DNA of 63,413 nt, counting the filler, from Pelomyxa schiedti (Eukaryota; Protista; Evosea), in NCBI GenBank assembly GCA_020536535.1. It is 6 parts of 6 records of this genome, joined end to end, with 100 filler letters (N's around TTAATTAATTAA, not from the genome) between each part and the next. Parts side by side here need not be neighbours in the genome. Positions count along the whole stretch, not along the records: positions 19,360 to 42,518 come from JAHLWZ010001059.1; 5 more parts are not named here. One strand, 5' to 3'. The notes beneath the pieces were generated by a model. The model was given only the letters and a program-made list of their open reading frames with translations. It made no database searches and was not told where the DNA came from. Positions 3,129 to 39,028 of this stretch are shown here, piece by piece. The position numbers and the translations under genes are program-made. How positions within the stretch are numbered: position 1 is the first letter of the stretch; every line of letters starts with the position of its first letter.

Positions 3129-3321
3129 TTTTTGTGGTTTTGACGAAAGGAGTTTCAAGTTGGGTCTATCGATGCAAGCATTACAGCAGGAACTTCCATT
3201 CCAAGAAACAGGAATCCTCCAACTACAGAAGCCCAAATGGATGCGTGGTCCAGAATCTCAAGCAGTGCCCTCTCCGATCTGTTGATTACTTTTGGGAGGC
3301 ATCAAAAGTGTTGTTTCACGA

Positions 3322-4941: not shown

Positions 4942-5238
4942 TATGTTCTGCGGAACAACAACAAACAGGGATGAACTCAACATTGGACAACCTGCAATGA
5001 CAGTGTGGTCTCCAACTGTCTTTTTGCCACCCCCTGTGGAGTGGGACCCAGATTTTCCCCTGGGTTTCGATATGTGGTAAAAAAAATACATTGCCTGAGC
5101 TCTTATCTTCTCAGTCCTCACACTTGTTGCAAGAGGGAGGGGAGACCCTCTTTTTTCATAATCAAACAAGGATGGTGTGTCCACTTATTGCACATAATTT
5201 TGGGAACAGTAAAAAATTAATGAAAAGCCAATTGTTTT

Positions 5239-19359: not shown

Positions 19360-19543
19360 GACTGACGCCACTCAGGGGAATTGCGTGTGCAGCTCTGCTC
19401 CGCTTTTCCTCATCAGGTTTTCGCCTTTTCATTGTTCCCCCCCTCGGCGCCCCCCCGCGGCCCATCGCCGATCCCCCTCGCGGCCCCGCGGCGCCCCCGC
19501 GGAATGGTTGTGGCTGGCCCCGTCCCTGTGCAGCCTGCATCAT
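19360..19543 (-). CDS. RG-rich N-terminus of a gene truncated by the gap, divergent from the UBR gene
   Basis: MMQAAQGRGQPQPFRGGAAGPRGGSAMGRGGAPRGGTMKRRK.. Confidence 0.35.
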
Positions 19544-19651
19544 CGTCGGTGTTTGGTGCGTGGCGAATGTTATCGAAAGCGTAATTTATCTGTTGAAGCC
19601 GGAAGGAGGAAAAAATAAAAGTTAGCCCGGCAACTGCGGGAATTAGGTTAA

Positions 19652-22600
19652 ATGGACGAAGGTGGTGTTGGTGGCGGTAATGGTGACGATATTTCGGCAC
19701 TAGGCGCCGCGGTTGTTGGACCTACGAATGTCGTTGCCTCTTCCTCTTGTGCCACGGAAAACGAAGATCTGCTGATCAGACTACTTTCGGAGGCGAGCGT
19801 AGCGGAAGCGATGCGGGCAATCAAGGAGAATGCGGGCGGGAATGACGGAATTGTGGGAGATTTGTTGGGCAAGTACCTTGACTTGATGTTCGAGCGGTGC
19901 GAATCTAGCACCCCTGACAACAAGGTTCGTTCCTGGAATCCTTGTTTTTCCATTTTTCTCTATGATCCCTTTGCTTTTTTTTTTTTTTCTTTATGAACAT
20001 ATCTCATTGTTGTGCAGCTGACATCTTTCGACGTGCTCACGTGGGGGCTGGGGATGCAGGAGCCCTCTGCTACTCTTTCTGTTGGTTATTCTTTTTTTTC
20101 GCTGTTTACTATTTATCTGATGAAACCAGCATTTTCTTTTCACGTTACTTCCTGTTATAGGAAATAGCAAAGAATGCTCCTCCACCAAGTGTTTGTGGTG
20201 TTGTTTGGAAGCAAGGGTCAACTGCCTACAAATGCCGTGACTGCGAAAGTGACCCTACTTGTGCAATTTGTGTGCAATGCTTTGCTGACGGTAATTACCA
20301 GTCTTCTTTGTTCAACGAAAGAAATCTCTAAACAAATAAGGGAATCACGCTGGACATGACTACTTTATGATTACAACTGCTGGTGGGTGTTGTGACTGTG
20401 GTGACCGCTCTGCTTGGAAAGAAACTGGCTTTTGCAGGCGGCACCGGGGTCCAGTGAGTGATCCCTCCTCACTTCTGCCGCCGCATATCAGATTTACAGC
20501 CTCTGTATCAATGCGCTCTGCAATGAAGTACATTGTATCTCTTATCAAGAGAAGAGAAAATGGGAGGATACAAATTTTCTTTGAGAAGTTGCTGCAGTTG
20601 TGCAAGCAAGCGGGTGAGGGGATGAGTGCTATTGTAGCATTGGAACTATGCCCCACATTAGAAACTGAGCTCCCTGCATCCACAGAATCTAGGCTAGCCC
20701 CACCAACTACAACTGTGGCGCCACCAGCTGAAGAAAGTGATGTGTGTGCATACGTTTCGAAACTAAGCTCAATGGCCGAAACGGCACTTTCCATGGCACC
20801 ACACACAGCAACAGTATCTCCGATATCTGCTGTACTTCTCAGTGCAGGTGAAATGTCAATTCCAACCCGTGCTGCTATGCATGCACTGTTATTTCATCTG
20901 TTGGGCGATCAGCACTTCAAAAATGAATTCGCCAGAGCTCTCATTCTTAATTATCCAGCTCTCCTCTTGAAATCAATTCAAAAACCAAAATACGATAATG
21001 AGGACATCCTTTCCTTCAGTGTGCAAGTTTTCTCTGTGAAAAGCCTCACATCTGACCTCGTTCTTTCAACCCGCTTGCTTGAGGTACTCAGTGGAAGTGC
21101 TTTGCAATGTTTTAGCACAGCCGTCACTCAGATCCCCAAAGAGAAACGTGTAGAATCTTCACTTCTTCCTGCCTTCCAATTTTCATTGTCAAGCAATCTG
21201 GTTGCACGTAAGCACTACTGGCGCATTTTCCACGATCTTCGATATGTTTTACAGTCGGTTGAGTGCTCCAAAATGCTTTTATTTGAGAATGCTATCGCCT
21301 TAAATGCCTTTATTGGAATGCTTAGTGTAATGGAGGCTATGAACCCTCAATTACGGGCACTTGTGTACCATGTTAACTACCAAAACACTAACTGGAACTC
21401 GACTTTCAATATGGTTGGACAAATTTCTTTCTGCACAAACTAAAACATTTTCCAGGAGTGTGATTTCATGCCAACAATGGGACTTCTTGTTCAAGGGTTC
21501 CAAAGAGGAACGCGCCAAGACCTAGCTTCAATGTGTCTCTCTCAGTTTGGGAGACAACTGAACGATTGGCTCTCCTTTTTACCTGTTTGTCCCCTTTTTG
21601 GAGGGTATGAAATGGTCAAATTCGACCCCCTCTGTGACTACTTGAGTTTACACATACCATTGCATCGGATTTTTACTCGCTTAACAAGGTACACCAGTAA
21701 TAATCTTAGCACAATCTTATGCTTATCCAGGGAGGCAATAAGTTGCTTCAACTTCTCTATTGAAGGTATAAGTGTTTTGATATAATCTACTTTTGATAAC
21801 ATGGTAAAACCAAATCAAGACTTGCACACTCTGTTACCACAGGAGTTCTTACTTCGTTACATAAAGCACCCCCTGCAAATTCAAGCATCCTTATCTCAGG
21901 TCCAATAATAATAAAAAAAAAAGCCAAAAATCGGTCTACATAGTTCTTACCAACAAATCCAATTTCTGTAGATTGCTGCAAATATGTGGGTTAGGAATGG
22001 TGGCAGTCTTTCCCAGCAGGCAGAACTTTACCACAGCTCGACATATCTCTCTGACTACTGTTATGACACTGACATTTTTGCACTCCAATTATGTGCTGTT
22101 TTGCTTGAGCCAACACACTTCCTTGCCATTTGTTTGCATCACTTTTGGATATGCTCTGAGCCACTCTGGCAGACCAAACTCACCCCGGAGTCCAGTGCAC
22201 TCTCTGTGGCATACAGTGTTGTGAAAAAAGCCACTGCAGAAACCAATGTGGAGCCTGGCCCAGCAAGAGCCGTCGTTGTATCGGGACTCAGAGGGGAGAA
22301 TCTCCAACATGGACTTCCTGACCCGAAGTCTTTTACTGAATTGTTGGCAGGATTCCTTTCCCTTTGTGTCATTATTGCCACCGATCGGACTCTGGCAGGT
22401 AACTCCACAGTCGAGACATTGTTGCATACCCAAATTGTGAATTTTCTGGTGGTGGAGAATCTCACACACAGCAAGCTGTTGCGCTTGCTACCTCAACCCT
22501 TGGCCAAGCATCCAAGTTTGGACAGTGTTCTAAAAACAGTCGCCACGTTTATTGAACCTTCTGGAATGGAGCCAGGGAGGTATCAACTAAAACCGGAGTA

Positions 22601-25596
22601 CTGGGAGGAATTTAACCCCTACTTTACGTAAGTTTTTTTTCCTAACAAACTGAAAATAATGCTCACTTCCCCAACAACTATGAAGTCACTTTGTGAGGTC
22701 GGATCTATCAAAGGCAGAAGAACGATACAACACACACATGAAATCAAGAAGCAGCTCTAGTGCTTCCTCTTCACATCCTTTCACTCCTTGTCCAAAGCTA
22801 CAACCACCATTTGCCCCACTTAGAAACATCACCAGGATCCTCCATTCACATCTTCTTCATGCAGTTTTGCTTGCCGTACTTTACAACCATGCAAGAAATG
22901 CCACGACAACTGAAAGGCTTCTCACAGTCACTCTGCATCTTCTAACTCTCGCAGCTAAAACTCACACAGAGTTCAGCACAGAATTACACTCACAAACTCC
23001 GCAACCACTTCAGCAACAATGTGTACTTAGCATACAACTACCGCATGAGAGCAACCTTGTTATCAATGTCAGAGCAGAGGTCATTCCTCCAAATTCAACA
23101 TCACCCGTCAGTATTCTCTCTTTACTTTGTGACCTTGCGAAAAGCACTTCTCATGCAGTGCATCTGCCACAAATAATTTTGGTTCTTCGTGAATTGTGCT
23201 CACTTGACACTGAAATACAATCAATTGTCACCTCTTCAGTTGGTGACTTGATCTCAACCCCTGAAGAGCAACAGGTGGCGGCCAACAAAAGGAGGCGATT
23301 GCAAAATTCACAAAAGCGTCAAGCGGCAATAATGGCACAGTTTGCTGCACAGCAGGAGGCTTTTGCACATAAATTTGCTGATGAAGGCATGTTTGGGGAT
23401 GTGAAAAAAGAGGAAGTAACCACCAGCAATACCAATACAACGAGAGAGTATGTGTGTGTAATGTGCCGTGAGACTGTAACTGATGCTTCGTCCTTGAACT
23501 CTAAACCCATGGGACTCATTGCACAAGTTCAACTTTCTTCAGTTTTACAGAAGGTGAAACTACAGTCTTTAGTGCTGCAAGGAACTGCATTTGACCAATG
23601 GGATGCTCTTAGTGATGTTACTGTAAGTAATGAACAGACTGAAGTGACCTCTCCGCCACACCCTTCGACATCAACAGCACCGCCAGCAACAACACCAGGT
23701 GCGGGCACTGAACAGGCTGCCAGACAAACTGCACCAACATCTACGACAACAAACTCCAGTGCGGAAACGGAACCGAACTCAAGTGGTACCACTACTAGCA
23801 CCATTACTGCTGAAAATGCTGTTGGTAACACTGCTCGTGAACTTCTACGAGATATTGGGAGTACACCTGGCGTATTTGTATCATGTTGTTCACATGCCAT
23901 ACATGCTGAATGTTTCCAAACTTACTTTGAAAGCTTGAGAAAGAGAGACGCAGCAGGGAGTGACTACGAGGGCCGCAGTGCTATCTGTCTAAGCCGTGGG
24001 GAATTTTGTTGCCCAGCCTGTCGCCAGCTTGCAAACTGTATCATACCAATAATCGTTGAACCCTCTGTGAACCAGCCGGAAGTTGTGCAAGGAGATTCAT
24101 CTTCCTCAACCTTGCCATCTGGTGCGTCACCTACAAGCAGTGGTGGAAGGGTAAATACGTTGAAGACTTGGGTAAGTGGACTGTTTGGTTTCTTCCAGAG
24201 CAAGCAAGCCGCAGAACCACTTCCAGCCAGTCCCCTCAATATTTTTGCCCACAGGATATACCAAGCGATAACAAAGCAACGAGATCTCCCGTCTCGTGGC
24301 ACACTCACTTTTCCCACATATGTTTCCGGTGCAATAGCCTCAACTATTGCAACCCTGGAGGTTGAGCTGCGGGCCAAGCCAACCGCCGAAGTGAAACTGT
24401 ATCCTCAGCAGCAGGAGCAACTGCGTTACATGTGCCGTGCCGCACATGCACTTTATGCGGAAGATAGTGCTCTATGCCAGCTCTACAAGGACTTACTCCT
24501 GGGTACACTTACTGGTGAGTTCGAAAAGCACTCAGTACCCCTGGAGCTGGAGGTCTCTCCCCTCGACTGTGACCCATTTGCTTGCGTTGTCCATCTTGTC
24601 TGCATGGAGGGATCAAATGTCTTGGAGTCCATTCTCCCTTCCGCGTTCTTTGCTTGGTTGGTGAAGTCTACCTTAGCACTCAAACTTCCCCGAACTACAT
24701 CGGAAACGGCTGCCACAACAAGCACCAGCACACAGTCTGAGGAGCAACGGGAATCTTTGGACTCCGTATGGGAATTGGGCTACCAAGTGGCAAAGCTGTG
24801 GTTACCAAAGTACTCTGATAAAGAAGCAACTGTTGACGAAGTAACACCTTCATCACTTGTTGAACAACTTGCGACGCACTCCTTATGCTTCCTCAGGAGG
24901 GTGGCCCTATTTATGCACGCATGTTTTGAATGGGAAAACCCCCCCACCGATTTTGAAGCTCTACTAACTTATTTGAAACTAACGGGAATGAAGCCATCCC
25001 TCTCAAACACAAGTTCTGTCCAAGAGACTACAACAAAACAAAAGCAGTTGACCTTCAAAACTCTGCAAGTTTGGCTGCAAAAAACAATAAGGAGCGGCAC
25101 CCAACACCCGCTTGTGGACTCCCCGCTAAAGCCCTTCTCGCTCATTTCGCTCCCCAACGAATATGTCAACCTTTTCCGGATGAGCATTGATCACCCTTGC
25201 TCTTTGTGCGGCTCAGTACCAGCGGAGCCAGCGGTGTGCCTTATTTGCGGAGACATGCTGTGCTGGGGATCACCTATGCCAGGACCCGGCGGAAAGGAAA
25301 TGGGACAATGCAACCTGCACTCTTGCATGTGCATGGGGGGAGTTGGAGTGCTGCTCCTGGTGAAGCAAGTGTCAGTTGTGCTCTTGGCTCCTCACCGGCT
25401 GCATGCCCGCGGCACTGTGTGGTGGTCAATATACCTGGACAGCCACCGGGAAGAGGATATTGGAATGAGGAGAGGCCGGCCGCTGTTCCTGGATGCCGCG
25501 AGATACGCCCAGCTCAACACACTCGTAGTCACCAACAACATCGAGAACTACTGCGTTCAGCACTTCCGTCCTGGCATCAACTGGTTACATTTTTGA
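19652..25596 (+). CDS. UBR1/2/3-family N-recognin E3 ubiquitin ligase (multi-exon)
   Basis: Spliced UBR box [54 protein letters not shown]; winged-helix HSKLL..LDSVLKTVATF; RING-H2 CVMC..CSHAIHAECF..CPAC; C-terminal CLICG..YLDSHREEDIGMRRGRPLFL. Confidence 0.93.
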
Positions 25597-25704
25597 GTGC
25601 CACAGCACCGAAATCCCTAAACAACTAAACGTCATCACACTCTTTTTCGGTTCTGTCAAACGCCAATCAAAACAGACTTCGAACCAAGAGGCGTGTCAGA
25701 CGGG

Positions 25705-28700
25705 ATGCAGGAGCTGCACTACATACAGACGACGAGGCCAGGGGGGGCGCTGAGCGGGTGCGCGGTGACGGCGGTGCCGCACAACGGGGCGCTGACGCTG
25801 GTGGTGGCGGACGGCGACTCGGTGCTGTGCGTGACGGCGTCCGAGTTCCTGGGGGACGACGCGGACGCCACCGCGGCCAGGGACGACGACGGGCGCGGGG
25901 GCTGCGGCGGCGACGACTGCCTGCTGCCGCTGCTGGACGAGCAGCCGCCGTCGTCCCCGCGCTGGTCCGCCGCCGACCCCCCGCCCGGCGAGTGCCCCGG
26001 CGCGTCCACGGCCAGCCCCGCCTACGGGCTGCGGCAGGCGCCGGCCCACCACCAGCAGCAGCCGCCGCAGGCCTCGGCGGAGTCGCCCCCGGCGGTGACG
26101 GGCGGAGGTGGAGGAGGAGGAGGTAGCACCAGCGGGGGGAGCAGCTGCGAGGGCGAGGAGCGGTGGCAGCTGCACTACGGGCACGGGCACAGGGGAGGCG
26201 GGGGGGAAGGGGGAGGAGGCGACGGCGGGGGAGGGCACTTGCACTACCACCACCAGCACCAGCACCAGTACCACAGGCACCCGCTGCAGAGCCACCTGCA
26301 CCGGCACCACGGCCGCTCCCTGTCCCAGGGCGACGTGGGGGGGTCGCAGGCCATGTGCCCCGACTGCGCCGCGGCTGGCGGCTGCGCCGCGGACTGCTCG
26401 GCCTGCGCCTCCACCTCGGGAAGCACCGTCACCACGAGCGTAGTGGTGGGCTCCGGCTCCGGCTCTGGTTCTGCTTCTGGTTCTGTGGGGGCAAACGGGA
26501 CTGGAAGTGGTGGCGGGGGTGTGAGTGGCAGCGGGAACGGGAACGGGAACGGGAACGGCGCAGAGAACGGGAGTGGATGCGGATGCGGAAGTGGAGGTGC
26601 CGCCATTGGAAATGACAGTGCTTGCGGCGGAGGGACACTTACTGGAAGCTGTGGTGGGGCCAGCTCTGCCAATACATCACCTTCGGTGGACAGGTGCAGC
26701 TCGTTGCATTGGCCGGCGGTTTCTGTTGATTTAATGAGCTCCGGAATGGGCCTGAACTTCATTTCACCTGCGCAGTCGGCACTCCCACCCTCACCGTCAG
26801 TTGCGCCACCATCACCACTGCAGTCACCGTGTTTAACGCAGTCGCCGAGTTCAAGTCAAACAGCAACCCTATCATCTTCACCTTCTCCCACCTCCACTTC
26901 TCTACCAGAAAATTGTAATTTGACAGTTGTATCTATTGCTTCCTTCCAAGTGAGTGGGAGGCCTGTTGTGGCGATTCTTGCATGTTTTGCTCAACCACTT
27001 GATGCGTCGGAGGTAACAACTGCACCCTCCAACATTAGTTCCCCTTGTATGTCAACTTTTGTATCCTTCACACTTCAATTCCCAATCCAACACATGCACC
27101 TTTTCCCCCCTTGCTATTCACTCCCCCTTCACTCACAAATCTTTTTTCCCAGATCAACCTCCTGACGTGCAAACCTCCCAGTCACAATCTCAATCTCAGT
27201 CACAGACTCAATCACAGACCCAATCACAACAGCGCCGTCGGATGTCTTGTGCACCTAAACCTGCTCCACCAAAGCTTCATGGAGTATTGTATGTGTGTGG
27301 CGCTCACACAGCTGAGTCCCGTAATCGCCCATTAGCTTCCATTATCAGCACTGACTTCCAGGCAATCCTGTTGAACTTTCCTCCATTAATTATGGAATGT
27401 ATGGAGGTATTTCTTTACTGCAGATACCCTCAACCCCTGACAATTTGATCGCAGGTCCACCGAAGTTGGACATTTGTCATAACAAGGAGTGATTGGTCCC
27501 GTCCAGCACCAAAGAAAGAAACAACCACTCAACCTCCACACCATCCATCACATACGTCGACACCACCCCCTCCTCCATCACCACCTCCACCACCTTATCC
27601 TGTGCATGTATTTGCCGAAAGCCATCATGGTAATTACACTGAAGTTGACGCAAAGATTCGCCTTCCAGAGTTTGACAATCTTCCTACAAGGTTTGAGTAT
27701 TCTGATTTTCTAATGAGCTAAGTTTCACAAGTTGCTTGAGTATTGCATCAAGAACAAGTAATTTAAATCGAATCACTGTTTGCGGGTGCACAAATGGATA
27801 TATTCGAATAGCCAGACACTGTGCTGGTACAATTACCCTCAACTTGTAATATATGACTATACAACTCAAATGGTCTTAGTTTTAAAGTTTTCTTTTTCGT
27901 GCAGAGGCCAAGTGTGAAATCATTGGGGAAATCACACTGGATGGACCAATAAGCTCCGTGTGCTTATTTCCACCTCGACCAACGCTTCCAATTGGTACGC
28001 ACTAGTTTGCTTCTCTCCTTGAACCACTTACCTTTGTTCCAGGGGCAATGCATCCTGTAGCACAACACATCCAGAAGTCTGTTGTTGGGCGTGGTCCAGG
28101 GTCATTCACAAGCAGGAGTACGAAGGAAGCACCAATTCCCACAAGAAGAATTGGTGATGTCGTTCCCCTTCCCATGTTTATGCCCGCTGATGAGCTTCTG
28201 CATCTCGCAGCAGCTTCTGCATTGGGCTATGCAATCGTTTTCAGGTTTTGCCCCTCCTCCACTATCTAGGGCTCAATTCCCGCAGTAATGTTCTGAAAGA
28301 GGGATTCTCAAAGGGGCAAATCCTTCCCGAATCCGACACGCACGATTCCTGCACCGGCGTTCTCGCCGCCGACATTGACTGGGACGGCAACAACGAATTA
28401 CTTGTCACAACCTTTGGACAAGCCATGCTAGTTTACAACCAATGTATCCCAAACTCCCCGCTTTGATGAAGGAATTCTAATTTACACACATACACAACAG
28501 GTGACATTACCGGCTCACCCAATCACGTGCAGTTTGAGCTCCACAAGACATACCGATTCGCCCGGCCTGTATATTCTCCTTGGTGCAGTGATGTCACCGG
28601 TGATGGCCTGGATGAGCTAATTGTGCCTGCAATGGGAGGATGCCACATCATGCAGGCGAACCTGAAAACAGCCAAGGAGAAGGTTCAAATTATCACATCA

Positions 28701-29577: not shown

Positions 29578-32500
29578 ATGATGCTTCGGGGCACCAACGG
29601 GTGCAGGGATGAGATCGCACCAAGTTGGGTGCGAGTGGAGGTAGACATCGTTGGGTGGTTGTCTGTGACCTCGGTGACAATGAGATTCATGAGCAACGAG
29701 GTAATTGGTAAACCGTGTACGTGGGCGGTTTTGAATTGTGGGATTGCAGGCACCACATGGCGAGTCTGTTGCAAAAGATGAATTTGAGTTGATTTTTGCC
29801 CTACCTGAAAATTCAACTGTTTGTGGTTATGCTGCTGACATTGAAGGTTTGTTGTTTTTTGTTTTGTTTTTCTTTCCCTCTGTGGCTTCAAACTACTTTT
29901 TTTTTTTTTTTCACAGTAGAATCTTTTGTTAGGAAAGATGGTTGAAGCCAATGTGATCGAAAAACAAGTTGCACGAGCTGCTCTTGAGACTAGTGTATAG
30001 AAAATTTCTCTTTGGACAATGAAGTGCTAAGTAAACAAGATAAGGGCCAATAAGGGAGCGAGCCTGGCCGAAAAAACTTCTGGCAATCTTTTCAGGGTTC
30101 GAATTTTTCCCGTTCTCCCTGGGATTGCTCGCGTTATCAAAGTTGCCTTCAGTAAAACTCTTGGCTGTGATGGCGTTTATAATTTCCCCTTGAAGTCCTG
30201 TGCTGATTCCACGTCAATTAAAGTTCGTCCCTCTCTTTTCCATCACCTGTGAACCAATTATATTTGGGTCTTGTTATTATTTAGATAAATGTCTTTTCTC
30301 TGTCCCCGAATTCTCCTCTTGTTACTCTTGGTGCTGAGCGCTACTCAATGACTCAACAAAGTGAAAGCAATGGTGTGGTTACTCAACATTAATCTTTTCT
30401 CTTATTTATTTGTCAGCAACTCAATATGAATTCAGCTTCTCCACTGATCTGCATTCTGTAAATACTACCATTTGCATCCACACTGGACTAGAATTGATTG
30501 ACCAAGCCACAATACCTGCGTTTACAGAACGTGGTGACGAGGCTATTGATGACAATGACTTTACATTTTTCTATGCCCCACTGGTTCTGAATTCAACGAA
30601 TATTCCGCAGTCAATGTCCCCCTCGGTTGTTGTGGTTCTATGGGACACTTCCCAAAGTAGATTAGAGTGCAATAAGTCCAGGTATTGTTTTGGTCATCCC
30701 ACCTATCTTAAAAAGAAAAGAGAAGTGGAAGCCTTGCTCTTCCTGCTTAAGAACTTGAATCCTTCCTTTATTGACGTTGTCTGCTTTTCCAATCAAGTTA
30801 CTTCTTATGAACGCTTTTCTGTGTGTAATCCAAGAAACAAAATATATTCTGAATGGTACTGGAGGGATCAGATAGAGTAACAACTACAATGAACTTCATC
30901 ACCAACCTTTCATATGACGGTGGCACCAATTTAAGTGCTGCTGTGAATTGGGCTGCTAAGTCTTTTTCTGCCATTAATGGAGTCATAGGGCTACTCTTTA
31001 GTGACGGTTTAACTTCCTGGGGGGAGGTATTCCCAACAAGAAAGTTTTTTGAGTATTCAACTCTTTTCCTAGGAGTATAAAACCGTAGAGATGCTGAATA
31101 TTCCCTTTTTTACTTTTACTGCCTCTGTGCGTGCCGATTTTCTAGTTTTACAAGTATCCCACCCTTTTTCCCCACTGAGTTTCACACTCCATAGAGAATC
31201 GCAAGTGGGACAGGAGGCCTTTTCTTTAACCTACAAGAGAACAAGTAGCGTTCCCTTCCCTGTTTCTTTTAACAATTAATAGAGACGTGTCTGCTGTCCT
31301 GGCAACTCGTGTTTATTACATGCGCGCAACTGACGTAACTGGTCGAATAGTTTCCGATGTGTATCCGTCAACACCACAACCAGTTGGTACACCCTTCTGG
31401 ATTTCTGGGAAAATTATTACACCAATACATGAAGGTTGGAAAATCAATTTAGACTATTTATGTCTAACATTCACCTTTCAAGACATTATCACGATTCACT
31501 TTTGTGTGCCCTCAACAAACATCTCTTTCACAAAAGCTGTGTCTGTTTCGCGAAATACCGTGACCACAGCACCCATGGGAATAGGTTATTTTCTTCACGT
31601 ATTATAAGGGTCGATATCAAACCAAGGTATAGTATCAAGATTTTGGGCACAGATGCTGGTAAACGAAAAAGCTTCCTTTGGAAACCCAAGCCACAGTAAG
31701 GAAAATATTATCTCCTTGGCAAGAAAATACAAGTTGCATTATCTCCCTTCCAATTATGCACTAAGATAGGATTCCAAAGATTTGTTACAGATGACACTTC
31801 TTTTATGCTACTCGACTCTCTTGATCAAGTATACCCCACGGTTACCATGTCAACACACTTTTTACACCCCCTTTCCTTTTTCACAAGTACTTGGAGCATG
31901 GAATTGAACCTGCCGATTCCCTTCCAGAAATCAAAAAAGAGTATGAAGTGAAAATTGCACTCAGAGAAGTAAGCATGTTTCTTTCACCTAAACCCTGAGA
32001 ATTATCCTTCCCATCAAGGCTGAAAAGGCAAGAGATTTGGTGCAGTATAGCCAGTATGTTGCCAAAATGTGGCGGAGGAGAGTTTCTTGGTGGGAAGCAC
32101 ATTACGATGGCTGTACCCGAGTGTGCTGGTATAGTATAACTTCCTGAACTAATAAAAATCATCAGAATTGCTTGGACTTGAACTTTTTGTCTTTAGAGGC
32201 AGCCCAATACCAGGTCAATGATAACAATCGGCCCTTGGAGCCAGATTTTATTCCTCCCACTCCCGAGCCTGCTCCTAAGCCAGCAGTGGAAGCACCACGA
32301 GCTGCTTCCGGCACCTTCGGTCTCTTTGGACGTAGGAAATTACATCCCCCTCCAGAACCGAGTGAATTGGTTGGCTCTTCATTCTGCCCTCTGTAGCTCA
32401 CTTTCCAATAGATAAAAAATCTGCGCGAGGCAAGTGAAGCTATAGAAAAGCGAGGATACCAACTCGAAAAGAGAATCAAGACAGAAAAAGAAAAAGCTCT

Positions 32501-35289
32501 AGCATTTCACCGAGCTAAGAATAAGCGTGGCACGCCTTTCCCAAGTTTGATGTAATGCTAAATATTGTCTGCAGCATGTATGTTCTCTCTTAAGCAGGCC
32601 AAATTACTATCTTCACAAATGGAGTCCCTGTTTACAAGACAAACTGCGATTGAACAGACTCTTTTGACACTGGAATCAGCAACCACTAACCTGGAATGCA
32701 TGAAAATTGGAGCCGCAGCCCTCGGGCAGGCCCCATCTGTGACCCTTTCAGTTGAGGATTCAATGGACAGTATCAGAGATCAACTGGATTCATGTGAAGA
32801 GATAAGTGACGCTATCTCTCAGCCAATTTCGGAAATATTTGATGAGGAAGAGCTCGAACAAGGTAGAGTTTCGACCAACATAACTAGACGTTAGACGTAC
32901 AACATAGAGCTTGAGGAACTTGTCTTCGCAGAATCGGGCCAGGAAACAATAATGAAAACCATAGCGTGCACTCCCCAGTCATCAGGAGTACAGTTAAATC
33001 GCAGCGAAGATGATGAGTTGGCTGAACTGGAAAGAATGATGATGGGAGATTATAGTCCATCATGTTTTTTTCTTCCCTTTTGGAGTGCATCTTACAAAGC
33101 AAAGTGCCAACCAACACTTCTGAAGAAATATTGCACCAGAATGGATCAGAATCCGTTACTCAGGAATTCTGTCAAGCAACCCAATACCCTGCACCTGATC
33201 CAGTACAATCTTGCGGCCATTTTAGTTTGGAAGCCCCTGTGCAACCATTTTCCTCAAGGCCAGAAGGAGATGAAAAATGTACGAAAGTGTTTGGGATCTT
33301 TACCCACCCTCACTACAGATGATTTTTCTTTACCTTCAGTGCATGATAGAGGCCGCGAAGTATCTGAGAGGTATCCTCACCCTGTTAGAAGTTGCCATCT
33401 CATCCTACACAGTGATGTGGAAAAATCTGGATGGTGTACAAAACAAGGAGGGTCCCTGAAAAGCTGGAAGAGGAGATTTTACGTGCTCAAAGGGAATAAT
33501 TTATTGTACTTCAAGTCCCCAACGGTGGTTATTCTCACCCCAACCTTACCTCTTAATTAAAAAAAAAACCAGGAAAAAGAACCAGTAGCCTGCATTAAAC
33601 TTGACCCAAGAATGGAGATTACCAAAGAAGAACGCCATACGCGTCATGTCCTCACCATAAAAAGTAGCTTCATTAACTTCTTAATCATTTAATAACCCCG
33701 GAAGTTCCCCGAAGATCCTACATAATGAATTTGGACTCTAAAGAGGAAATTGACTCCTGGGTGGATTGTTTACAGCGGAAGCTAGCCACCCTTGGTCCTG
33801 CCTTACAAATTCTGCCAATCCCACAAGGGCAAAGAATTCTACCAAGTTATCCATTATCTTCGCCAGTGCTTGTTGACATTGTTACAGTGATAAACAATTC
33901 TGAAAGATTTTTCCTTTCCCTCCCTGATGTTACCGTTCTCCAAGAATATGGACATGTCCTCAAACGTCATTCAAGTATGCCAGAGTTTTTCCCAGTATTC
34001 TGAGTTCAATAGACATCCTCAACTCTCTGAGAACAATAATTGAAAGCAATAGTGTCCTTTGCCTAAATCCCGCTTTCTTTATCCAAGTGGCACTGTGTCT
34101 TTTTGAACACGGAGGAATGTCACTTTTGTATTTACTCTCCTTAAACTATACAATTACCTCACGTTTCTGTTCCAAGATTCTTAAGTAACATGACTGAAAG
34201 TAATCCTGAAAACAGTCGGGCAATCCGATCGGCTTCTTTCCTTCTTATGCAAGCTGGACTTATCGAGTTTCTTTCATTCTTTTCCCTTGTATCGTGACTT
34301 AAGTGCACATAGTGAGGCTATTTATCTGCTCGAGAAATGCTTGAAACTCCGGCAAGAGGAGCCCCAAGTCATTTTATATTTATCTTTTGATTTCTTAATG
34401 TAATCTTTCAGTCACACCGTGATCTTGCATTAGCTCTGATGCAAACCGGAAAACCAGGTGTGCTCCAACTAAAATCTAGGCTTTGGTGGTAAACTTTTCT
34501 GAATGCAGGTGATCTGGAGAGAGCACTGTCGCTGATGCACCACGTGATTACCCAAAGATGGGACACTAGATTTGCCCAAATTCAAGTTGTTGCCCTTATG
34601 GTTAGTCTGCCTAGCTCTTTTTTTTTCCGAACCAAGGTGTCTGCAGGAGTTTAATTCCATGTTGACAAGATCTGATACCCCAAGGTACTGAGGATTGACA
34701 AGTAGGAGGTTCTGAATTTTGATTCCATAGTACCACTTCTGTGGATCCTGATCCGCGAATAATTTCACCAATTGATGTTGATATCCGCTGTGTAATGCAA
34801 TGGGATACTGATATGACAGGCATACATGAGCCTTTTTTCTTGGGAATGAAAGTCTGCAGATGTGGAGCTTATAGTAATAGAGCCTAATGGGGAAAAGTGC
34901 TTCAGTTTCAACAACCTCAGTAAATGTGGTGCATTAGTTTCCAAGAACTTTAGCCGCGGATATGGCCCAACTGAATATATTGTATGCTAAATAATTCCAC
35001 TTACATTTAAATGCCGCGAATAACCAGTTTCAAGATAAAAAAAGCTGTTCCTGGAACCTACAAGATATTTGCCCGGCTATACCACACGCCGGACCCCAGG
35101 TATTCACACAATTATGCTGTTTTTGACTCACATCAATCATCCTTTCCGGAAAGCATTATTGTTACCACCTGTGTGAGTGTTACTGTGGATTTCGGCAGAA
35201 CAACAGAACAACTCGTGGGATACTGTGTAGCACCCGTCAGTCACAAAACTCCCGAGGTTCTTGTTGGAACAATAGATTGCACGAATTAA
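29578..35289 (+). CDS. Chimeric VIT-vWA-[Snf7/ESCRT-III]-[PH]-TPR-DUF2135 protein (multi-exon)
   Basis: VIT (FELIFALPENSTVCGYAADIEGKMVEANVIEKQVAR..GNLFRVRIFP); vWA (LWDTSQS, GGTNLS, LFSDG); RFWAQ..FVTDDTSFMLLDSLDQYLEHGIEP..WRRRVSWW; Snf7 32316-32925; PH about 33412-33790; [61 protein letters not shown]. Confidence 0.8.
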
Positions 35290-35414
35290 TCCCTTATGGG
35301 CAATCAAAGTTTTTTTTTGTTTTCTTTGTTTAAAGTTTAAACATGGCAAGGTGTTTTGTTGGTTTGGTAAATGTTACAGCAGACTCTCTTTCGTTCTACC
35401 CGGAGATTTCTTGA

Positions 35415-38400
35415 TTATTCTGTTTGAAATGTAAATAAAAGCCCATTGAGAAGGAGACATACCAGTGAGAATCCTACAGGGACATCTGTGTCATCACGCA
35501 CAGTGCGGACTTTAAGGAACCCCGAGTCCCAATCGGGGAGTTCCTGCAGTGCTTCTATGACCCTTTCAGTTGAATAGAAGCCGTGATATAGGGTTCTGGT
35601 CTCTTCGGGTGTTGTTCCCTTGAGCTGATGGCCCCATGTCACGCACTCTATTCCATTCACAACAAGTACATGTCCTTGGTCCAAGACGAGGTTATAAACC
35701 ACTCCACTGGAATTAGGAATTTCGTGGACATCGTCGAGCTTGCCTACCAGCTCTCGTGGTGTAGTCCAGATTCCGTTTATTCTAACGGGATGTCCGGGTG
35801 TGATGCACAGGCCTCCTGGGAAAGATACCAGGTTTTTGTTTGGCCGGCTCAGTTCCACAAGGCACACCACTTTGGCCACCTTTCCGCCGCTTATCTCCAC
35901 TTGGTCTCCTTTCGCCAGCTCACTTATAGGAACATCTCCTGTGCCGCGTAAATGGACGAGGCACTTGCCCGCGAAGCAGCCACCACCTCCACCGCCATAG
36001 TATGCTTCCATGACTGGTGGTGTGGGCTCGCGTGGTGGAGGAGAGGGAGCTTTCGGAGGCACGTAAGCGGCAGCTTTTGCAGGGGTGGGTGCGAACGCTG
36101 GTGTTGGTGTCGGTGGAAGCTTCGGGATTGGTTGAGGAGTGGGTATGGTGTTAGGGGTAACTGGAGTCTTGCCTGATGACTTGACTGTGGCTGTGGGAGG
36201 AGGTAGTGAGATGAAAATCTTGCCGCCTGATTCAGATTTCTGCCTGAATAGTGTGCCACCATACAGCTGGAGCCCAGGATCAAGCATGTTGGTGCATATT
36301 TCAAGTTGATGAGCACGAACTAGTGCGCGTAGGTAATGTTTTCCCCATCGGTTGTAACGAGCATTATCATTGACGGCTTTGGTCATTCTTCCACTTACAT
36401 CAACATAGATTGCTTCAGCAAGAGGACTATTTGCAGCAGGGGCAGACTGAGCAACGGACCTCTCCAGAGAGGACATATCTTGCTTGTATGAACCGGTGTT
36501 AATAAATTTACGAACGGAATCAATAACTGTGCATCGGATGTCTGCAAACATGGAGTCTGGTGTGGGTTGATAGGACGTCCCCGTGGCTGCAACACGCACC
36601 TCCTTTCCTTGTGAATTAGTCCAAACAAGAACTGCCTCTAGGTACTCTCCCTCTCCGCTGGTTGGGAGATAAAGAGGAGCTACAACGTGCTTCACTTGTC
36701 CAAGATGTAGAGCTCCCAGATTCGCAACCCTTCCCCATGTTGCATCCTTCACTAATACTCCCCCTTTTACAGGCCCTGCAAACTTGGAACCTCCTTTTAG
36801 CATTAAGTGAAGCATAGCTTGTTGTGTCAGCGTGGTAATAGAATTTGCAACGCAATTGACAATGCAGGTCCCGATCAACTTTGCGTCTGGGATGAATGCA
36901 AAGCTACCGTTTCCTTCCTCAGCAAGTGCCGTAAGTAACTGGCTGTCTAAGTTGTAGCCAACCCCGAAAATATTGATCTGAAACTTGAAATCGGGGTGTG
37001 ACTCCATATACCGCTTCAACTCTGGAATATGGCCCCGAGGAGGGTTGACATTTGGTTGGCCATCAGTGAGAAGAAGCAGGAACTGTTTGCGCGGGACAGT
37101 GCTTCCTTTAATTTCAGGGCCTGTACGGAGAGAGTCCATGCCCTTTTGTAGGCCTGCCCAGAGGTTTGTAGAGTCTAGGGGTATAAGTTTTGATACAGCA
37201 GCGAAAGCTGCTTCTCTTCCCGTAGAGTCAAGTTGAGTGAGGGGAAGAACTGTCCTGGCTGTGTCATCAAAAGTCACAACAGAAAGTCGATCCTCATCTC
37301 CAAGGAGGTGCACAATAGTGGACACACTATGCTTCACAATATCAAGAACTGTAAGGCCGTCGTCACGAATCACAGTGCCGTTATCATCACGATAAGTCAC
37401 CTCGGTACCCATGGACCCACTTACATCTACACAGCAGCAAATATCAACAGGAACCCGTTGGCAAACATCAGGCACTCGGATAGTTATAGCAACAGGTGTT
37501 TCACGCACAAAATGTTGAGGAAGGTTTCCACTTGGTGCAATCTCGATTGCTACTAAGTCTTCAGACTTTACTTCATCTTCCAAGGGAACACCAGTAACTT
37601 CATCACCCCAACCATCGTCCTCCGCAGTGGCAGTTGTTTTACGGCTCATATCAACATCAGCCATATCTAGTCCCTAGCAAAGTTTCAGTGTCATTTTTCA
37701 ATGAAATCTAAGAATACTGACCTTTGGTGCCTCTGCCTCCTCAGTATCTACAACTCCACAGCTGTAAACTTGAATGAGCCCGGAAATGTGAGACCGGCAA
37801 ATAGGACACTGCGGATTCGCGGAATTCTGCACGGCCGTCAAGCACGGCTTGCACCCACACTGGTGCCCACATGGAACCACCAAGAAATCAGCATTAGCAG
37901 TCAAGCACACCGCACACTTCCCCTGCTTCGGGGTTGACTTGGCAGGAGTAGTGGTGGTGGTAGCAGTAGTACTAGCAGCAGCAGGAGTAGCAGGAGCAGT
38001 AGCGGTAGTAGTAACAACAATAGGCTCGTTAAGAAGAGCCAGCAAATCGCGGAACACAGTGTCCATGTTGCGCTGGGCGTTGAGGGCCTGGACGCGGCCG
38101 CCAAAGCACGGGACGATGAGGCCCAGCTGGGCGTGGAACGCGCGGATGCGCTGGCGCGCGGCGGCCTCGTCGAGGTCGCAGGCGCGGCGGACCAGGCGGT
38201 CGCGGGGCACCGCGGCGGGCGGCGGCGCGTAGCGGTCGTGGTAGATGGCTCCGGTGCGCGAGTCGGTCCAGCGGCCCAGCATGTTGGCGACGCACTGCGC
38301 GTCGGCCATCTGGAACACGACGGCGCGCTCCACCGCGACGTGGCGCAGGAGCTCCTGGGCCTGGCTGACCGTGCGGGGGAAGCCGTCCAGCAGCGCGCCC

Positions 38401-38740
38401 TTGGAGGCGCAGTCGGGCTCCGCCAGGCGGTCCTTGATCAGCTGGACCACGAGGTCGTCGGGGACAAAGTCGCCGGCGTTGACGAACGGCGCAACCTTGG
38501 CGCCGAGGGGGGTGTTGCGAGCGACGGCGTCGCGGAAAATGTCACCGGTGGAAACGTGGACGAGGCTACGGTAAGAACAAAGTAGTGAGTTTTTTCGTCG
38601 GGTGGGCGGCCATATGTTTTTTGTTTGTAATAAAAACGTTTGTGGTACCCTAGTTTCAGACTGAGTTTGTGGCATTGGGTGCCTTTGCCGGAACCTGGGG
38701 GACCAAGAATCACAATAACTCGTGCTGGTGTCGTTGCCAT
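35415..38740 (-). CDS. Adenylate kinase-RING-vWA-Vwaint-Hint(Vint) fusion protein (3 exons)
   Basis: GPPGSGKGTQ, STGDIFR, LDGFPRT; C3HC4 RING CAVC..PCGH..CKPC..CPIC; VDVSGSM, LLTDGQP; RWGKHYLRAL..DPGLQLYG; Hint GG-CFAG..ITPGHPV..VYNLVL..NGIECVTWGH; in-frame GT-AG introns 38648-38566 and 37721-37674. Confidence 0.85.
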
Positions 38741-39028
38741 TCAACTTTTCTGCTTTTTTTTTGTTGGTTTTTTCCTTTGTTGATTTCAGCGGCGGAAACC
38801 AACGTTCTTGGCTTTTTCTCAGACCGGTGTAGGATTGAACCGTGCCCAATTAGCAAAAAGATCGCTCCTAGGCACACCGTGAGTATTGCTCCTTCTGAGT
38901 ATTCTCAATACCCAATGTGTCTACGAACTCCAGAGCGCTTTCTTCACCCTTTTCTTTTCTCAATAGTTTTTCCAGTTGGTGCCTACTTGTGGGACCCGGG
39001 TGGTGTGGAGGTGTTCACAGACGAGGGG

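Follow-up and report, generated by a model that had tools for sequence, protein, structure and literature searches.

Does a single protein of the amoeba Pelomyxa schiedti combine a scaffold of bacterial type with an ESCRT-III module and a PH domain, and what could such a protein do? The question is raised by a locus on contig JAHLWZ010001059.1, which forms part of the window (the whole stretch of 63,413 nucleotides that was analyzed). An earlier note had read this locus as one continuous spliced protein, in which Snf7 and PH domains are inserted into a VIT-vWA-TPR-DUF2135 scaffold.

A single intron-rich gene is predicted to encode scaffold, Snf7 and PH modules

All sequence motifs quoted in the earlier note were found on the + strand and in the order given, and its coordinates for the start of the gene, the stop and the FGLFGRRK motif agree with ours (Table 1). 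In GenBank, the locus is split inside the vWA domain into gene A (274 aa; 29680-30880), for which PF08487 (VIT) is recorded, and gene B starting at 30889. The latter encodes KAH3742698.1 (P0001, 1041 aa; window 30889-35289), which maps exactly to the DNA as 29 exons; the introns between them measure 38-59 nt (26 GT-AG and 2 GC-AG). The two halves join in frame via a 47-nt GT-AG intron (30825-30871), and KAH3742698.1 wrongly lacks the VIT end. In the full model, introns range from 38 to 86 nt (median 46; GT/GC-AG). Exons 9-36 represent the exact map of P0001, while exons 1-8 were modeled by us using dynamic programming and homology, with two alternatives for one splice choice (29992/30032 or 29994/30040).

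Mid-scaffold, Snf7 module, PH domain and tail already reside within one GenBank model, KAH3742698.1. The junction between scaffold and Snf7 lies inside one exon, and translation revealed no in-frame ATG across the open frame 32148-32393. Snf7 and PH are encoded in one open frame, which stays open from 32895 to 33557 with or without removal of three annotated introns. Finally, the introns are tiny and canonical, as reported for the P. schiedti genome (PMC8887013). Therefore, the sequence argues for a nuclear, intron-rich single gene encoding a protein of ~1356 aa, and the continuity claimed previously is backed by GenBank model, exon map and the junction exon devoid of an ATG. The Mastigamoeba balamuthi orthologue is collinear with the whole gene span (tblastn).

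Table 1. Features of the locus in window coordinates.
Feature	Position	Strand	Evidence or content
Whole gene	29578-35289	+	ATG 29578; stop 35287-35289; 36 exons, 35 introns
VIT-like N-terminal domain, exons 1-4	29578-30222	+	alignment to the N-module HMM of bacteria starts at residue 18
vWA domain, intact MIDAS	30417-31153	+	alignment with bacterial and amoebozoan homologues
MIDAS DxSxS	30644-30658	+	
MIDAS DGGT	30916-30927	+	
MIDAS SDG	within 30991-31008	+	
Mid-scaffold (beta-sandwich and helices), N-module end	31195-32120	+	N-module HMM aligns to residue 595; alignment
Conserved WRRRVSWWE, closes N-module	32070-32096	+	
Junction exon, Pro-rich linker to Snf7 start	32166-32369	+	frame translation, exon map, alignment to MxLFG start
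FGLFGRRK, within junction exon	32316-32339	+	
Predicted complete Snf7/CHMP4-type ESCRT-III module, alpha1-alpha6, 4 exons	32316-33047	+	Pfam, PDB sequence search, AlphaFold, Foldseek
Snf7 Pfam core	32412-32948	+	
alpha6 motif DDELAELERMMMG	33009-33047	+	
Low-complexity linker, Snf7 to PH	33048-33416	+	pLDDT <50
PH domain, basic K-x-G...K-x-W-K-R-R-F-Y motif	33417-33778	+	Pfam, PDB matches, model
C-module	34018-35277	+	C-module HMM, 231.2 bits, E 1.7e-71
TPR-like helical repeat	34241-34652	+	sub-threshold TPR matches; motif at 34356-34438
C-terminal beta-sandwich	34774-35277	+	GYGPTEY 34958-34978; homologous to DUF2135/YfaP_C-bearing bacterial proteins

The scaffold is related to bacterial VIT...DUF2135 proteins

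HMMs of the N- and C-modules were built by us from bacterial homologues, and the N-module of the Pelomyxa protein scored 316.8 bits (E 2.5e-97). Bacterial VIT regions matched the N-terminal domain in tblastn, and the MIDAS columns of the vWA domain are invariant across 65 homologues. When scanned exon by exon, Pfam yielded only weak matches for VIT, located in the fourth exon, and for vWA. The C-module is 35-43% identical to bacterial VIT...DUF2135 proteins, and the AlphaFold model of the bacterial homologue P0150 supports its layout. The same model superposes on ITIH1 (Foldseek E 3e-20), in line with an ITIH-like VIT-vWA head and with the assignment of the mid-scaffold. The scaffold proposed in the earlier note thus stands insofar as both modules are homologous to these bacterial proteins, but the Pfam DUF2135 model (PF09906) did not match the Pelomyxa protein even at E<=10 and the TPR matches stayed below the Pfam cut-offs. 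Despite the missing PF09906 match, sequence comparison clearly points to homology of the tail region with PF09906-carrying bacterial proteins.

The bacterial proteins comprise ~1000 aa and carry PF08487, PF13757 and PF09906. They share the MIDAS residues and the motifs TSLxVLE, WxxRVx... and GYGPxEY with the amoeba scaffold, and the slot accommodating the inserts is located at the identical position. In agreement with the variable linker noted previously for this mainly bacterial family, the bacterial slot is short (90-185 aa), disordered and devoid of domains, as judged from the P0150 model and HMM spans, whereas the slot of the amoeba protein holds eukaryotic modules. At least one bacterial member has a start read as signal-peptide-like. 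In contrast, no such N-terminus was read in the Pelomyxa protein, which we therefore take to be cytosolic and which, unlike the bacterial proteins, is encoded with spliceosomal introns.

The slot holds a predicted complete Snf7 module followed by a PH domain

Pfam detected Snf7 at residues 354-502 of P0001 (77.6 bits, E 1.2e-21; cut-off 27.3). Named homologues of the insert are SNF7/CHMP4 proteins, and its best match among PDB sequences is yeast Snf7 (E 5.7e-14). AlphaFold predicted five helices with pLDDT values >90 over the hairpin, and Foldseek matched the insert to the Snf7 core and the CHMP4B hairpin. Hence, HMM match and modeled helical fold both agree with the earlier assignment. The alignment of the insert with free-standing Snf7 proteins extends from their MxLFG start as far as their alpha6 ExELxELxxxM end; according to these models, it is a complete module of the SNF7/CHMP4 class with ESCRT-III fold. 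Start (32316) and completeness of the domain had been recognized correctly, but the proposed end at 32925 was too short, as the alpha6 motif reaches 33047.

Residues forming the polymer and membrane interfaces have been mapped in yeast Snf7 (PMC4720517), and we read the PDB alignment against them. At the polymer interface, 7 of 13 hydrophobic positions are kept and M107-E109 are deleted; three of seven membrane lysines and one of the three basic residues in alpha1 are retained. The polymer interface is only partly kept in the Pelomyxa insert. The PH domain that had been placed behind Snf7 was confirmed by Pfam (residues 618-708 of P0001; 57.2 bits, E 2.7e-15; cut-off 25.1), and its AlphaFold model exhibits strands and a C-terminal helix. 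The PH domains of TAPP1, DAPP1 and Grp1/cytohesin are the closest PDB sequences, and the basic motif is predicted to be of the 3-phosphoinositide type.

The Snf7 insertion predates the Pelomyxa/Mastigamoeba split

Searching other amoebozoans, we found Snf7 in the same slot of M. balamuthi protein P0169 (33.8-38.7 bits). This module covers Pfam positions 3-88 only and is more eroded than its Pelomyxa counterpart, and the P0169 model contains no PH domain. Phylogenies of scaffold and Snf7 were run separately. In the scaffold tree both proteins are sisters (SH-aLRT 81), and a sister relation of the Snf7 inserts was not rejected by the AU test (p 0.78), the constrained tree being 25 lnL units better. 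The two proteins are 31% identical in Snf7, 23.5% in the N-module and 36.6% in the C-module of the scaffold. Since the orthologue carries Snf7 in the same slot, the fusion is old rather than an assembly artefact, and the comparison indicates that the insertion predates the split of the two genera. In the literature searched, no paper describing the VIT-vWA-Snf7-PH-TPR architecture was found, as the earlier note had supposed, but the combination is shared by M. balamuthi as far as Snf7 is concerned, without PH. Of note, both sequences are already public in databases, unremarked.

Other host modules occupy the slot in amoebozoan copies

In further amoebozoan copies, the same slot is occupied either by an R-SNARE motif together with a Rab1-like domain, or by ubiquitin, or by part of actin. 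The R-SNARE motif lacks a recognizable transmembrane anchor, the P-loop segment of the Rab1-like domain is placed after alpha5, ubiquitin ends with LRLRG-T rather than GG, and actin is represented by roughly residues 5-68. Six of the 13 eukaryote-type members show no recognizable slot module, and long slots lacking a recognizable domain occur in many members of the family. According to the scaffold tree, the insert type is constant within clades. A Pelomyxa paralogue on a different contig (34 exons) has a comparable slot insertion, and complete transcriptome-derived ORFs of Arcella, Echinamoeba and Rhizamoeba possess long filled slots. What is new, then, is that a slot which is short and disordered in bacteria is filled with other host modules in amoebozoan copies.

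Possible functions and alternative explanations

Judging from its domains, the Pelomyxa protein could be an adaptor or cap directed to membranes and ESCRT-III. Of the readings considered this is the most likely one, although we tentatively give it slightly less than an even chance. PH domain and N-terminal amphipathic Snf7 motif would bring the protein to sites rich in phosphoinositides on endosomes, phagosomes or the plasma membrane, where the Snf7 module would join or cap the ESCRT-III polymer and a partner of the Bro1/ALIX type could bind to its alpha6 helix. In this way, the MIDAS and TPR surfaces would be tethered at ESCRT-III sites and bind putative ligands. Bulky CHMP4 fusions are known to block filament turnover, and the protein may therefore act as regulator or cap rather than as building block. 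Sister copies with R-SNARE and Rab1-like domain, ubiquitin or actin would likewise be directed to different machineries of trafficking or of the cytoskeleton. That the MIDAS/TPR scaffold is recruited to ESCRT filaments on the membranes of phagosomes or symbiont vacuoles, as suggested previously, would be plausible. Against an adaptor role speak the internal position of the Snf7 N-terminal membrane motif, which is not at a free N-terminus, the partial loss of the polymer interface, and the more eroded Mastigamoeba module lacking PH. Moreover, actin residues 5-68 cannot fold as actin and fit targeting poorly.

The slot can hold several host modules, a number of them in truncated or altered form, and an explanation therefore has to account for all of them. 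A role as integrated bait or decoy thereby becomes a serious rival, although we regard it as rather unlikely. By analogy, the scaffold would be a sensor whose flexible slot presents host proteins, as copies or as fragments, which intracellular bacteria and their effectors attack (ESCRT-III, SNAREs, Rab1, ubiquitin, the actin D-loop region). An effector that cleaves, modifies or binds the bait would alter the interplay of VIT-vWA head and TPR/beta-sandwich tail and elicit a response. The host proteins named are well-known targets of effectors; intracellular bacteria occur naturally in amoebae, and Pelomyxa harbors endosymbionts. Five unrelated modules in one slot, which is exposed and disordered in the bacterial model, their clade-wise constancy, and their incomplete or altered state with regard to normal activity, including the eroded Snf7 interface, would fit. 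All this is a pattern, however: the scaffold has no recognizable signaling or executioner domain and no PADLOC or NCBIfam family match, six of the 13 eukaryote-type members lack a recognizable module, the Snf7 of Pelomyxa, being complete and well conserved, is more than a minimal target peptide, and we found no literature supporting decoys in Amoebozoa. Alternatively, and in our view improbably, a Snf7 gene, along with a block of PH exons, was captured once in the ancestor of Archamoebae and now serves only as coiled-coil spacer or self-association element without any link to the ESCRT pathway. Interface erosion, which is stronger in Mastigamoeba, the lack of PH there and the many long slots without recognizable domain agree with such a relic, but all six Snf7 helices persist, including N-terminal motif and alpha6 partner-binding motif, Snf7 identity between the genera is as high as that of the scaffold, and the canonical phosphoinositide-type PH motif is kept.

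It is highly improbable that the Snf7 and PH exons are those of another gene, separate or nested, or that the contig is a chimera from whole-genome amplification, the continuous protein existing only in the gene prediction. The genome was indeed obtained from amplified single-cell DNA and its genes were predicted using Augustus, PASA and EVM (PMC8887013), GenBank mis-split this very locus, and where GT/AG sites are numerous, dynamic programming will always find an open frame of some kind. However, no ATG precedes the Snf7 start in frame within its exon, a nested gene would require a host intron of ~2 kb while the 35 introns of this gene measure 38-86 nt, and scaffold sequence flanks the insert on both sides. 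The independently sequenced Mastigamoeba, the Pelomyxa paralogue and the transcriptome-derived ORFs argue likewise.

Comparison with known systems

The integrated decoys of plant NLRs and the bait region of alpha2-macroglobulin resemble the present case in that a conserved scaffold presents varied copies of host proteins or an exposed bait at one permissive site; this is an analogy only, as neither sequence nor fold is related and no signaling output is known. The VIT-vWA(MIDAS) head is shared with ITIH heavy chains, VWA5A/BCSC-1, PARP4 and Dictyostelium Vwa1 (PMC10539598), and intracellular VIT-vWA proteins are thought to be protein-binding hubs. None of the eukaryotic VIT-vWA proteins has been described with a TPR and YfaP_C-like tail or an ESCRT-III or PH insertion. 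With Snf7/Vps32/CHMP4 (PF03357), the insert has in common the alpha1-alpha6 layout, the MxLFG-type N-terminal motif, the acidic alpha5 and the alpha6 partner-binding motif, and yeast Snf7, fly Shrub and human CHMP4B match it best in sequence and fold. However, these proteins are free and have ~220 aa, while the insert is embedded at both ends in a much longer chain, lacks three residues at the alpha2/alpha3 junction and has changes at about half of the positions mapped for polymer and membrane contact. An environmental protein, P0002, consists of 400 aa of unassigned sequence and a C-terminal Snf7, and is nearer to the layout of CHMP7 than the Pelomyxa gene is. CHMP7, the ESCRT-III protein known to have a large additional region, likewise joins a Snf7-type module to a sizeable part unrelated to ESCRT-III within a single chain, but carries the Snf7-like part at the C-terminus behind ESCRT-II-like winged helices, whereas in the Pelomyxa protein Snf7 is internal, preceded by VIT-vWA and followed by the TPR/beta-sandwich tail.

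Results

A single gene spans scaffold, Snf7 and PH domains

An exhaustive protein search with the largest Snf7 exon of the locus retrieved a 100% identical Pelomyxa schiedti protein of 1041 aa (KAH3742698.1, hereafter P0001), deposited under the name 'Vault protein inter-alpha-trypsin domain protein'. P0001 maps exactly to 29 exons at window 30889-35289, which are separated by introns of 38-59 nt, 26 of them of the GT-AG and two of the GC-AG type. These intron types agree with the figures for the whole genome, which has 7.4 introns per gene (98.4% GT-AG, 1.6% GC-AG) and whose gene models came from Augustus, with later refinement by PASA/EVM on the basis of single-cell transcriptomes (PMC8887013).

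In GenBank the locus is divided into two genes, and the split bisects one vWA domain, leaving its MIDAS motifs on either side. The two parts form a single chain in every homologue, bacterial and amoebozoan, and a short intron joins the two GenBank genes in frame. Therefore, a single gene reaching from the ATG at 29578 to the stop at 35289, as proposed in the earlier note following manual splicing, is the better model, and a mis-split gene of the Pelomyxa annotation is thereby corrected. The full gene comprises 36 exons and 35 introns (38-86 nt, median 46) and its product has ~1356 aa. Exons 1-8 represent our own tight-intron model, in which the splice choices 29992/30032 and 29994/30040 are both possible, and the remainder is the exact map of P0001.

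As read from the DNA, the case for one gene across scaffold, Snf7 and PH is strong. The junction exon starts in the linker just after the scaffold motif and continues uninterrupted into the start of Snf7. The open frame 32148-32393 is devoid of an ATG, the next in-frame Met lying within alpha2, and thus a free Snf7 gene would have no start codon here. At the other end, a single open frame of 221 codons (32895-33557) runs from the last exon of Snf7 into the first of PH, and it is open with or without removal of its three annotated introns (41+40+42 = 123 nt), so that Snf7 and PH stay in frame whether the transcript is spliced or not. That the continuous protein is an artefact and not a real single gene appears very improbable.

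Two further candidates were rejected. A nested gene would demand a host intron of ~2 kb, and all introns of the gene are shorter than 90 nt. A chimera arising from whole-genome amplification is excluded because the fusion is shared with Mastigamoeba balamuthi, the Snf7 insertion having been kept since before the Pelomyxidae/Mastigamoebidae split. Over the entire gene, retention would leave the frame open for 5 of the 35 introns.

Positions of features at the locus (window coordinates) and of slots and their modules in related proteins (residues)
Feature	Position	Remarks
Window piece	19360-42518	contig JAHLWZ010001059.1, 23,159 bp; Pelomyxa schiedti GCA_020536535.1
Separate 274-aa 'VIT' gene in GenBank	29680-30880	ends 8 nt upstream of next gene, 30889-35289
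MIDAS DxSxS	30644-30658	inside first GenBank gene
47-nt GT-AG intron	30825-30871	in-frame join of the two GenBank genes
MIDAS DGGT	30916-30927	inside second GenBank gene
MIDAS SDG	30991-31008	inside second GenBank gene
Scaffold motif WRRRVSWWE	32070-32096	exon preceding junction exon
Junction exon	32166-32369	linker start to Snf7 start
P. schiedti paralogue KAH3731978.1 (P0261, 1688 aa)	slot 593-1401	R-SNARE motif 922-970; Rab1-like domain 1043-1175
JGI protein P0286	slot 636-2074	synaptobrevin 1482-1561
Arcella intermedia transcript P0240	slot 598-1682	whole ubiquitin ~1512-1587, end LRLRG-T
JGI protein P0238	slot 625-1310	actin, only ~residues 5-68
EukProt protein P0275	slot 578-820	actin, only ~residues 5-68
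Echinamoeba, Rhizamoeba, JGI P0239, three Logan proteins	long slots	no recognisable module

The locus is flanked upstream by a UBR1-type N-recognin gene (window 19360-25596), which runs off the edge of the piece, and by a GC-rich (0.68) ORF at 25693-27165, which is Gly/Ser/His-rich and belongs to an annotated 893-aa protein without Pfam family. On the minus strand at 35396-38740 (ORFs 35415-37664 and 37698-38849), an annotated 1056-aa protein is an unusual fusion, comprising adenylate kinase, RING finger, vWA, Vwaint and Vint (Hint-type) domains.

The insert contains a complete Snf7 domain followed by a PH domain

The Pfam Snf7 model (PF03357) matched residues 354-502 of P0001 with 77.6 bits (cut-off 27.3), covering profile positions 3-158 of 171; in the ~1356-aa protein the module is placed at residues 651-850. 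Its nearest named database proteins are SNF7/CHMP4, and yeast Snf7, fly Shrub and human CHMP4B are the nearest solved structures by sequence. In an alignment with 52 Snf7 homologues, the insert spans the whole length of a free-standing Snf7: TFGLFGRRK, internal here, aligns at the sequence level to the MxLFG start, and DDELAELERMMMG to the C-terminal alpha6 motif with its ExELxELxxxM end. Short stretches are deleted where alpha2 meets alpha3 and within the alpha3-alpha4 loop.

AlphaFold was run on the insert alone (P0001 residues 320-740); the full-length alignment was not used for folding, its bacterial rows being misaligned over the Snf7 region. The model shows five helices (31-68, 72-123, 131-155, 164-189 and 203-214) with pLDDT >90 in the hairpin, and Foldseek matched it to the Snf7 core with a TM of 0.70 and to the CHMP4B hairpin with a TM of 0.88 (rmsd 1.3 A). 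The Snf7 domain recognised from the sequence alone in the earlier note is thus confirmed by both profile and fold. When the alignment to yeast Snf7 was read against the protofilament and membrane interface residues mapped in that protein (PMC4720517), 7 out of 13 hydrophobic positions were identical or conservative and three of the seven membrane lysines were kept. E95 and E102 are retained, R25 and H29 lost and M107-E109 deleted.

A disordered linker connects the Snf7 helices to the PH-like unit in the AlphaFold model. The Pfam PH model (PF00169) scored 57.2 bits (cut-off 25.1) on P0001 residues 618-708, and the nearest PDB relatives, the PH domains of TAPP1 (E 6.3e-15), DAPP1 and Grp1/cytohesin, are PI(3,4)P2/PIP3 binders. 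The basic K-x-G ... K/R-x-R-aromatic motif of 3-phosphoinositide binders can be read in the sequence. Six strands and a C-terminal helix were modeled with moderate pLDDT, since this part of the alignment contained no homologues.

The scaffold is shared with bacterial proteins

The C-terminal 320 residues of P0001 matched ~30 bacterial proteins of 940-1180 aa with 30-43% identity, which carry VIT (PF08487/PF13757) and DUF2135 (PF09906, renamed YfaP_C); identity of the C-module to the PF09906-bearing bacterial proteins is 35-43%. Custom HMMs built from 14 bacterial members detected both modules in the Pelomyxa protein: the N-module, in which VIT, the MIDAS-bearing vWA and a helical middle run to the WxxRVxWWE motif, with 316.8 bits (E 2.5e-97, profile positions 45-599), and the C-module, made of a TPR-like repeat and a C-terminal beta-sandwich from the (I/V)KPWxP motif on, with 231.2 bits (E 1.7e-71). 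The vWA has the DxSxS, DGGT and SDG motifs of a MIDAS, and the annotated N-terminal gene has a PF08487 entry. When exons were scanned one at a time, VIT and vWA matched their Pfam models only weakly, TPR matches at P0001 residues 820-894 fall under the cut-off, and PF09906 did not match P0001:720-1041 even at E<=10. PF09906 is a short model of 48 positions, matching bacterial, Echinamoeba and actin-type members. Hence, the VIT-vWA-TPR-DUF2135 scaffold claimed initially stands as regards both modules, with TPR below threshold and with 'DUF2135' resting on homology of the region and not on the Pfam model.

AlphaFold of the bacterial homologue P0150 (65-row alignment, pLDDT 85.6, pTM 0.85) revealed the order beta-rich VIT, vWA, beta-sandwich plus helices, a disordered stretch at 554-625 corresponding to the slot, a helical repeat and a C-terminal beta-sandwich. 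Its head matches the structure of heavy chain 1 of inter-alpha-inhibitor (E 3e-20). The scaffold had no named counterpart among NCBIfam families or PADLOC defence systems, and the gene neighbourhoods of two bacterial homologues had no common context. Possibly, this mainly bacterial scaffold family came to amoebae from bacteria.

The Snf7 insertion arose before Pelomyxidae and Mastigamoebidae separated

The search that yielded the bacterial homologues also found P0169 of Mastigamoeba balamuthi (EukProt EP00727, 1176 aa), which is collinear with the entire window locus in tblastn. Its Snf7 domain scores 33.8-38.7 bits, above the cut-off, and is located between the same two scaffold motifs as in Pelomyxa. 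No PH domain was seen in the P0169 protein model. Of the architecture for which the earlier note knew of no described protein, the fusion of scaffold and Snf7 therefore recurs in a second amoeba, the PH domain being seen in Pelomyxa. P0169 has an extra segment of ~100 aa before Snf7 (residues ~600-690), which looks faintly UBA-like (YPEESVVAALRETGA) and which Pfam did not match even at E<=1.

The scaffold tree, built from 13 eukaryote-type and 28 bacterial members, places 12 eukaryote-type rows in one clade (SH-aLRT 99) and pairs the Snf7-bearing Pelomyxa and Mastigamoeba proteins as sisters (SH-aLRT 81), a grouping that is supportive and not proof given the long branches. The Snf7-domain tree lacked resolution and did not join the two inserts; when they were constrained together, the log-likelihood lay 25 units above that of the unconstrained quick-search tree (AU p 0.78). 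Between the two proteins, identity reaches 31% for Snf7, compared with 23.5% for the N-module and 36.6% for the C-module. Taken together, the shared slot, the scaffold tree, the AU test and the identity levels show that the Snf7 insertion is older than the Pelomyxidae/Mastigamoebidae split and was retained since.

The slot accommodates various host proteins

Further long members of the eukaryote type were found using the N-module of the Echinamoeba homologue, and their Pfam matches were placed against the module boundaries (see table). For Echinamoeba, JGI P0239 and Rhizamoeba, PDB sequence searches with the long slot gave no match. The scaffold tree joins the SNARE-type Pelomyxa protein P0261 and JGI P0286 as sisters (SH-aLRT 80), so insert type tracks clades. 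The slot is a general insertion site in amoebozoan scaffold copies.

P0261 is encoded on a separate contig by 34 exons with tiny introns (JAHLWZ010001277.1, positions 1009-7679; GenBank name 'TonB-dependent receptor'). Its Rab part starts at switch I, with beta1/P-loop/alpha1 following alpha5 in a later exon (5781-5908), and resembles a circularly permuted small GTPase.

Among all representatives of a 1.8-billion-protein library, P0002 was the only other long protein with E <1e-10 to the Snf7 exon. This complete ORF of 563 aa (positions 26-1717 of a 1743-nt environmental contig, JGI sample 3300012469) is the best non-self match of the exon (46% identity). It consists of an unrelated N-terminal part, 400 aa without recognisable family, and a C-terminal Snf7 (128.7 bits), and may represent a second kind of Snf7 fusion.

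Discussion

What is new here is a conserved domain architecture assembled from known domains; the Pelomyxa and Mastigamoeba sequences were already public and had gone unremarked. Neither genome paper mentions ESCRT or Snf7, and in the literature searched DUF2135 was not mentioned and nothing useful on YfaP was found. A complete Snf7 is tethered at both ends within a 150-kDa scaffold. Maintained from a time before two amoeba genera diverged, this module provides a natural experiment in what a tethered ESCRT-III can do, be it as cap, nucleator, address tag or bait.

Architecture and age of the protein are observed; beyond these, we infer, with somewhat less than even confidence, that it is a targeted adaptor, the reading we favour. 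PH and the N-terminal motif of Snf7 would carry the protein to phosphoinositide-rich membranes, where the Snf7 module could join or cap ESCRT-III assemblies and present alpha6 to a Bro1-type partner. MIDAS and TPR surfaces would thereby be positioned at ESCRT-III/membrane sites. The ubiquitin, R-SNARE and Rab modules in other slots may likewise be address labels of the endomembrane system. Against an adaptor counts that the interface mapped in yeast Snf7 is kept only in part, and that the actin fragment of other members cannot be a folding unit. A role of the Snf7 insert as relic or spacer seems unlikely.

The main rival is that slot modules are integrated baits, i.e. targets for bacterial effectors. 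The modules are among the classic targets of such effectors, several being shortened or otherwise changed, and the slot that carries them is exposed. Amoebae are the natural training ground of intracellular bacteria and are under pressure from them. However, there is no visible output domain and no literature support, integrated decoys in Amoebozoa being absent from the literature searched, and we regard bait as rather doubtful for the Snf7 insert. Extended to the whole amoebozoan VIT-vWA-TPR-YfaP_C family, the idea would make these proteins cytosolic sensors whose disordered slot repeatedly captured host proteins, whole or partial, as effector baits (Snf7 plus PH, R-SNARE plus Rab1-like, ubiquitin, the actin D-loop region), which we likewise consider improbable. 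In E. coli, yfaP shares an operon with yfaS, a homologue of alpha2-macroglobulin, which may offer a lead for the bait idea. Through the slot pattern, the uncharacterised DUF2135/YfaP_C family gains a testable link to membrane traffic or to defence against intracellular bacteria, and a common function behind the slot pattern, if found, would be the larger result.

ESCRT-III subunits are nearly always small free proteins, both ends of which serve autoinhibition, membrane insertion and partner binding; Snf7/CHMP4 subunits form polymers on membranes, with recycling by Vps4. The Pelomyxa module resembles Snf7/CHMP4 in its family-model match, its helical hairpin followed by alpha3-alpha5(6) and the presence of the sequence motifs for N-terminal membrane insertion and for Bro1/ALIX binding by alpha6; unlike these free subunits of about 200-250 aa, it is embedded in a much larger protein. 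It also differs from CHMP7, in which a C-terminal Snf7-like domain follows ESCRT-II-like winged-helix domains: in Pelomyxa Snf7 lies inside the chain, VIT-vWA makes up the N-terminal part, and Pfam scans of P0001 reported no winged-helix family. If the bait reading were true, the family would represent an innate-immunity design of amoebae on a bacteria-derived scaffold, alike in design to the integrated decoys of plant NLRs and of separate origin.
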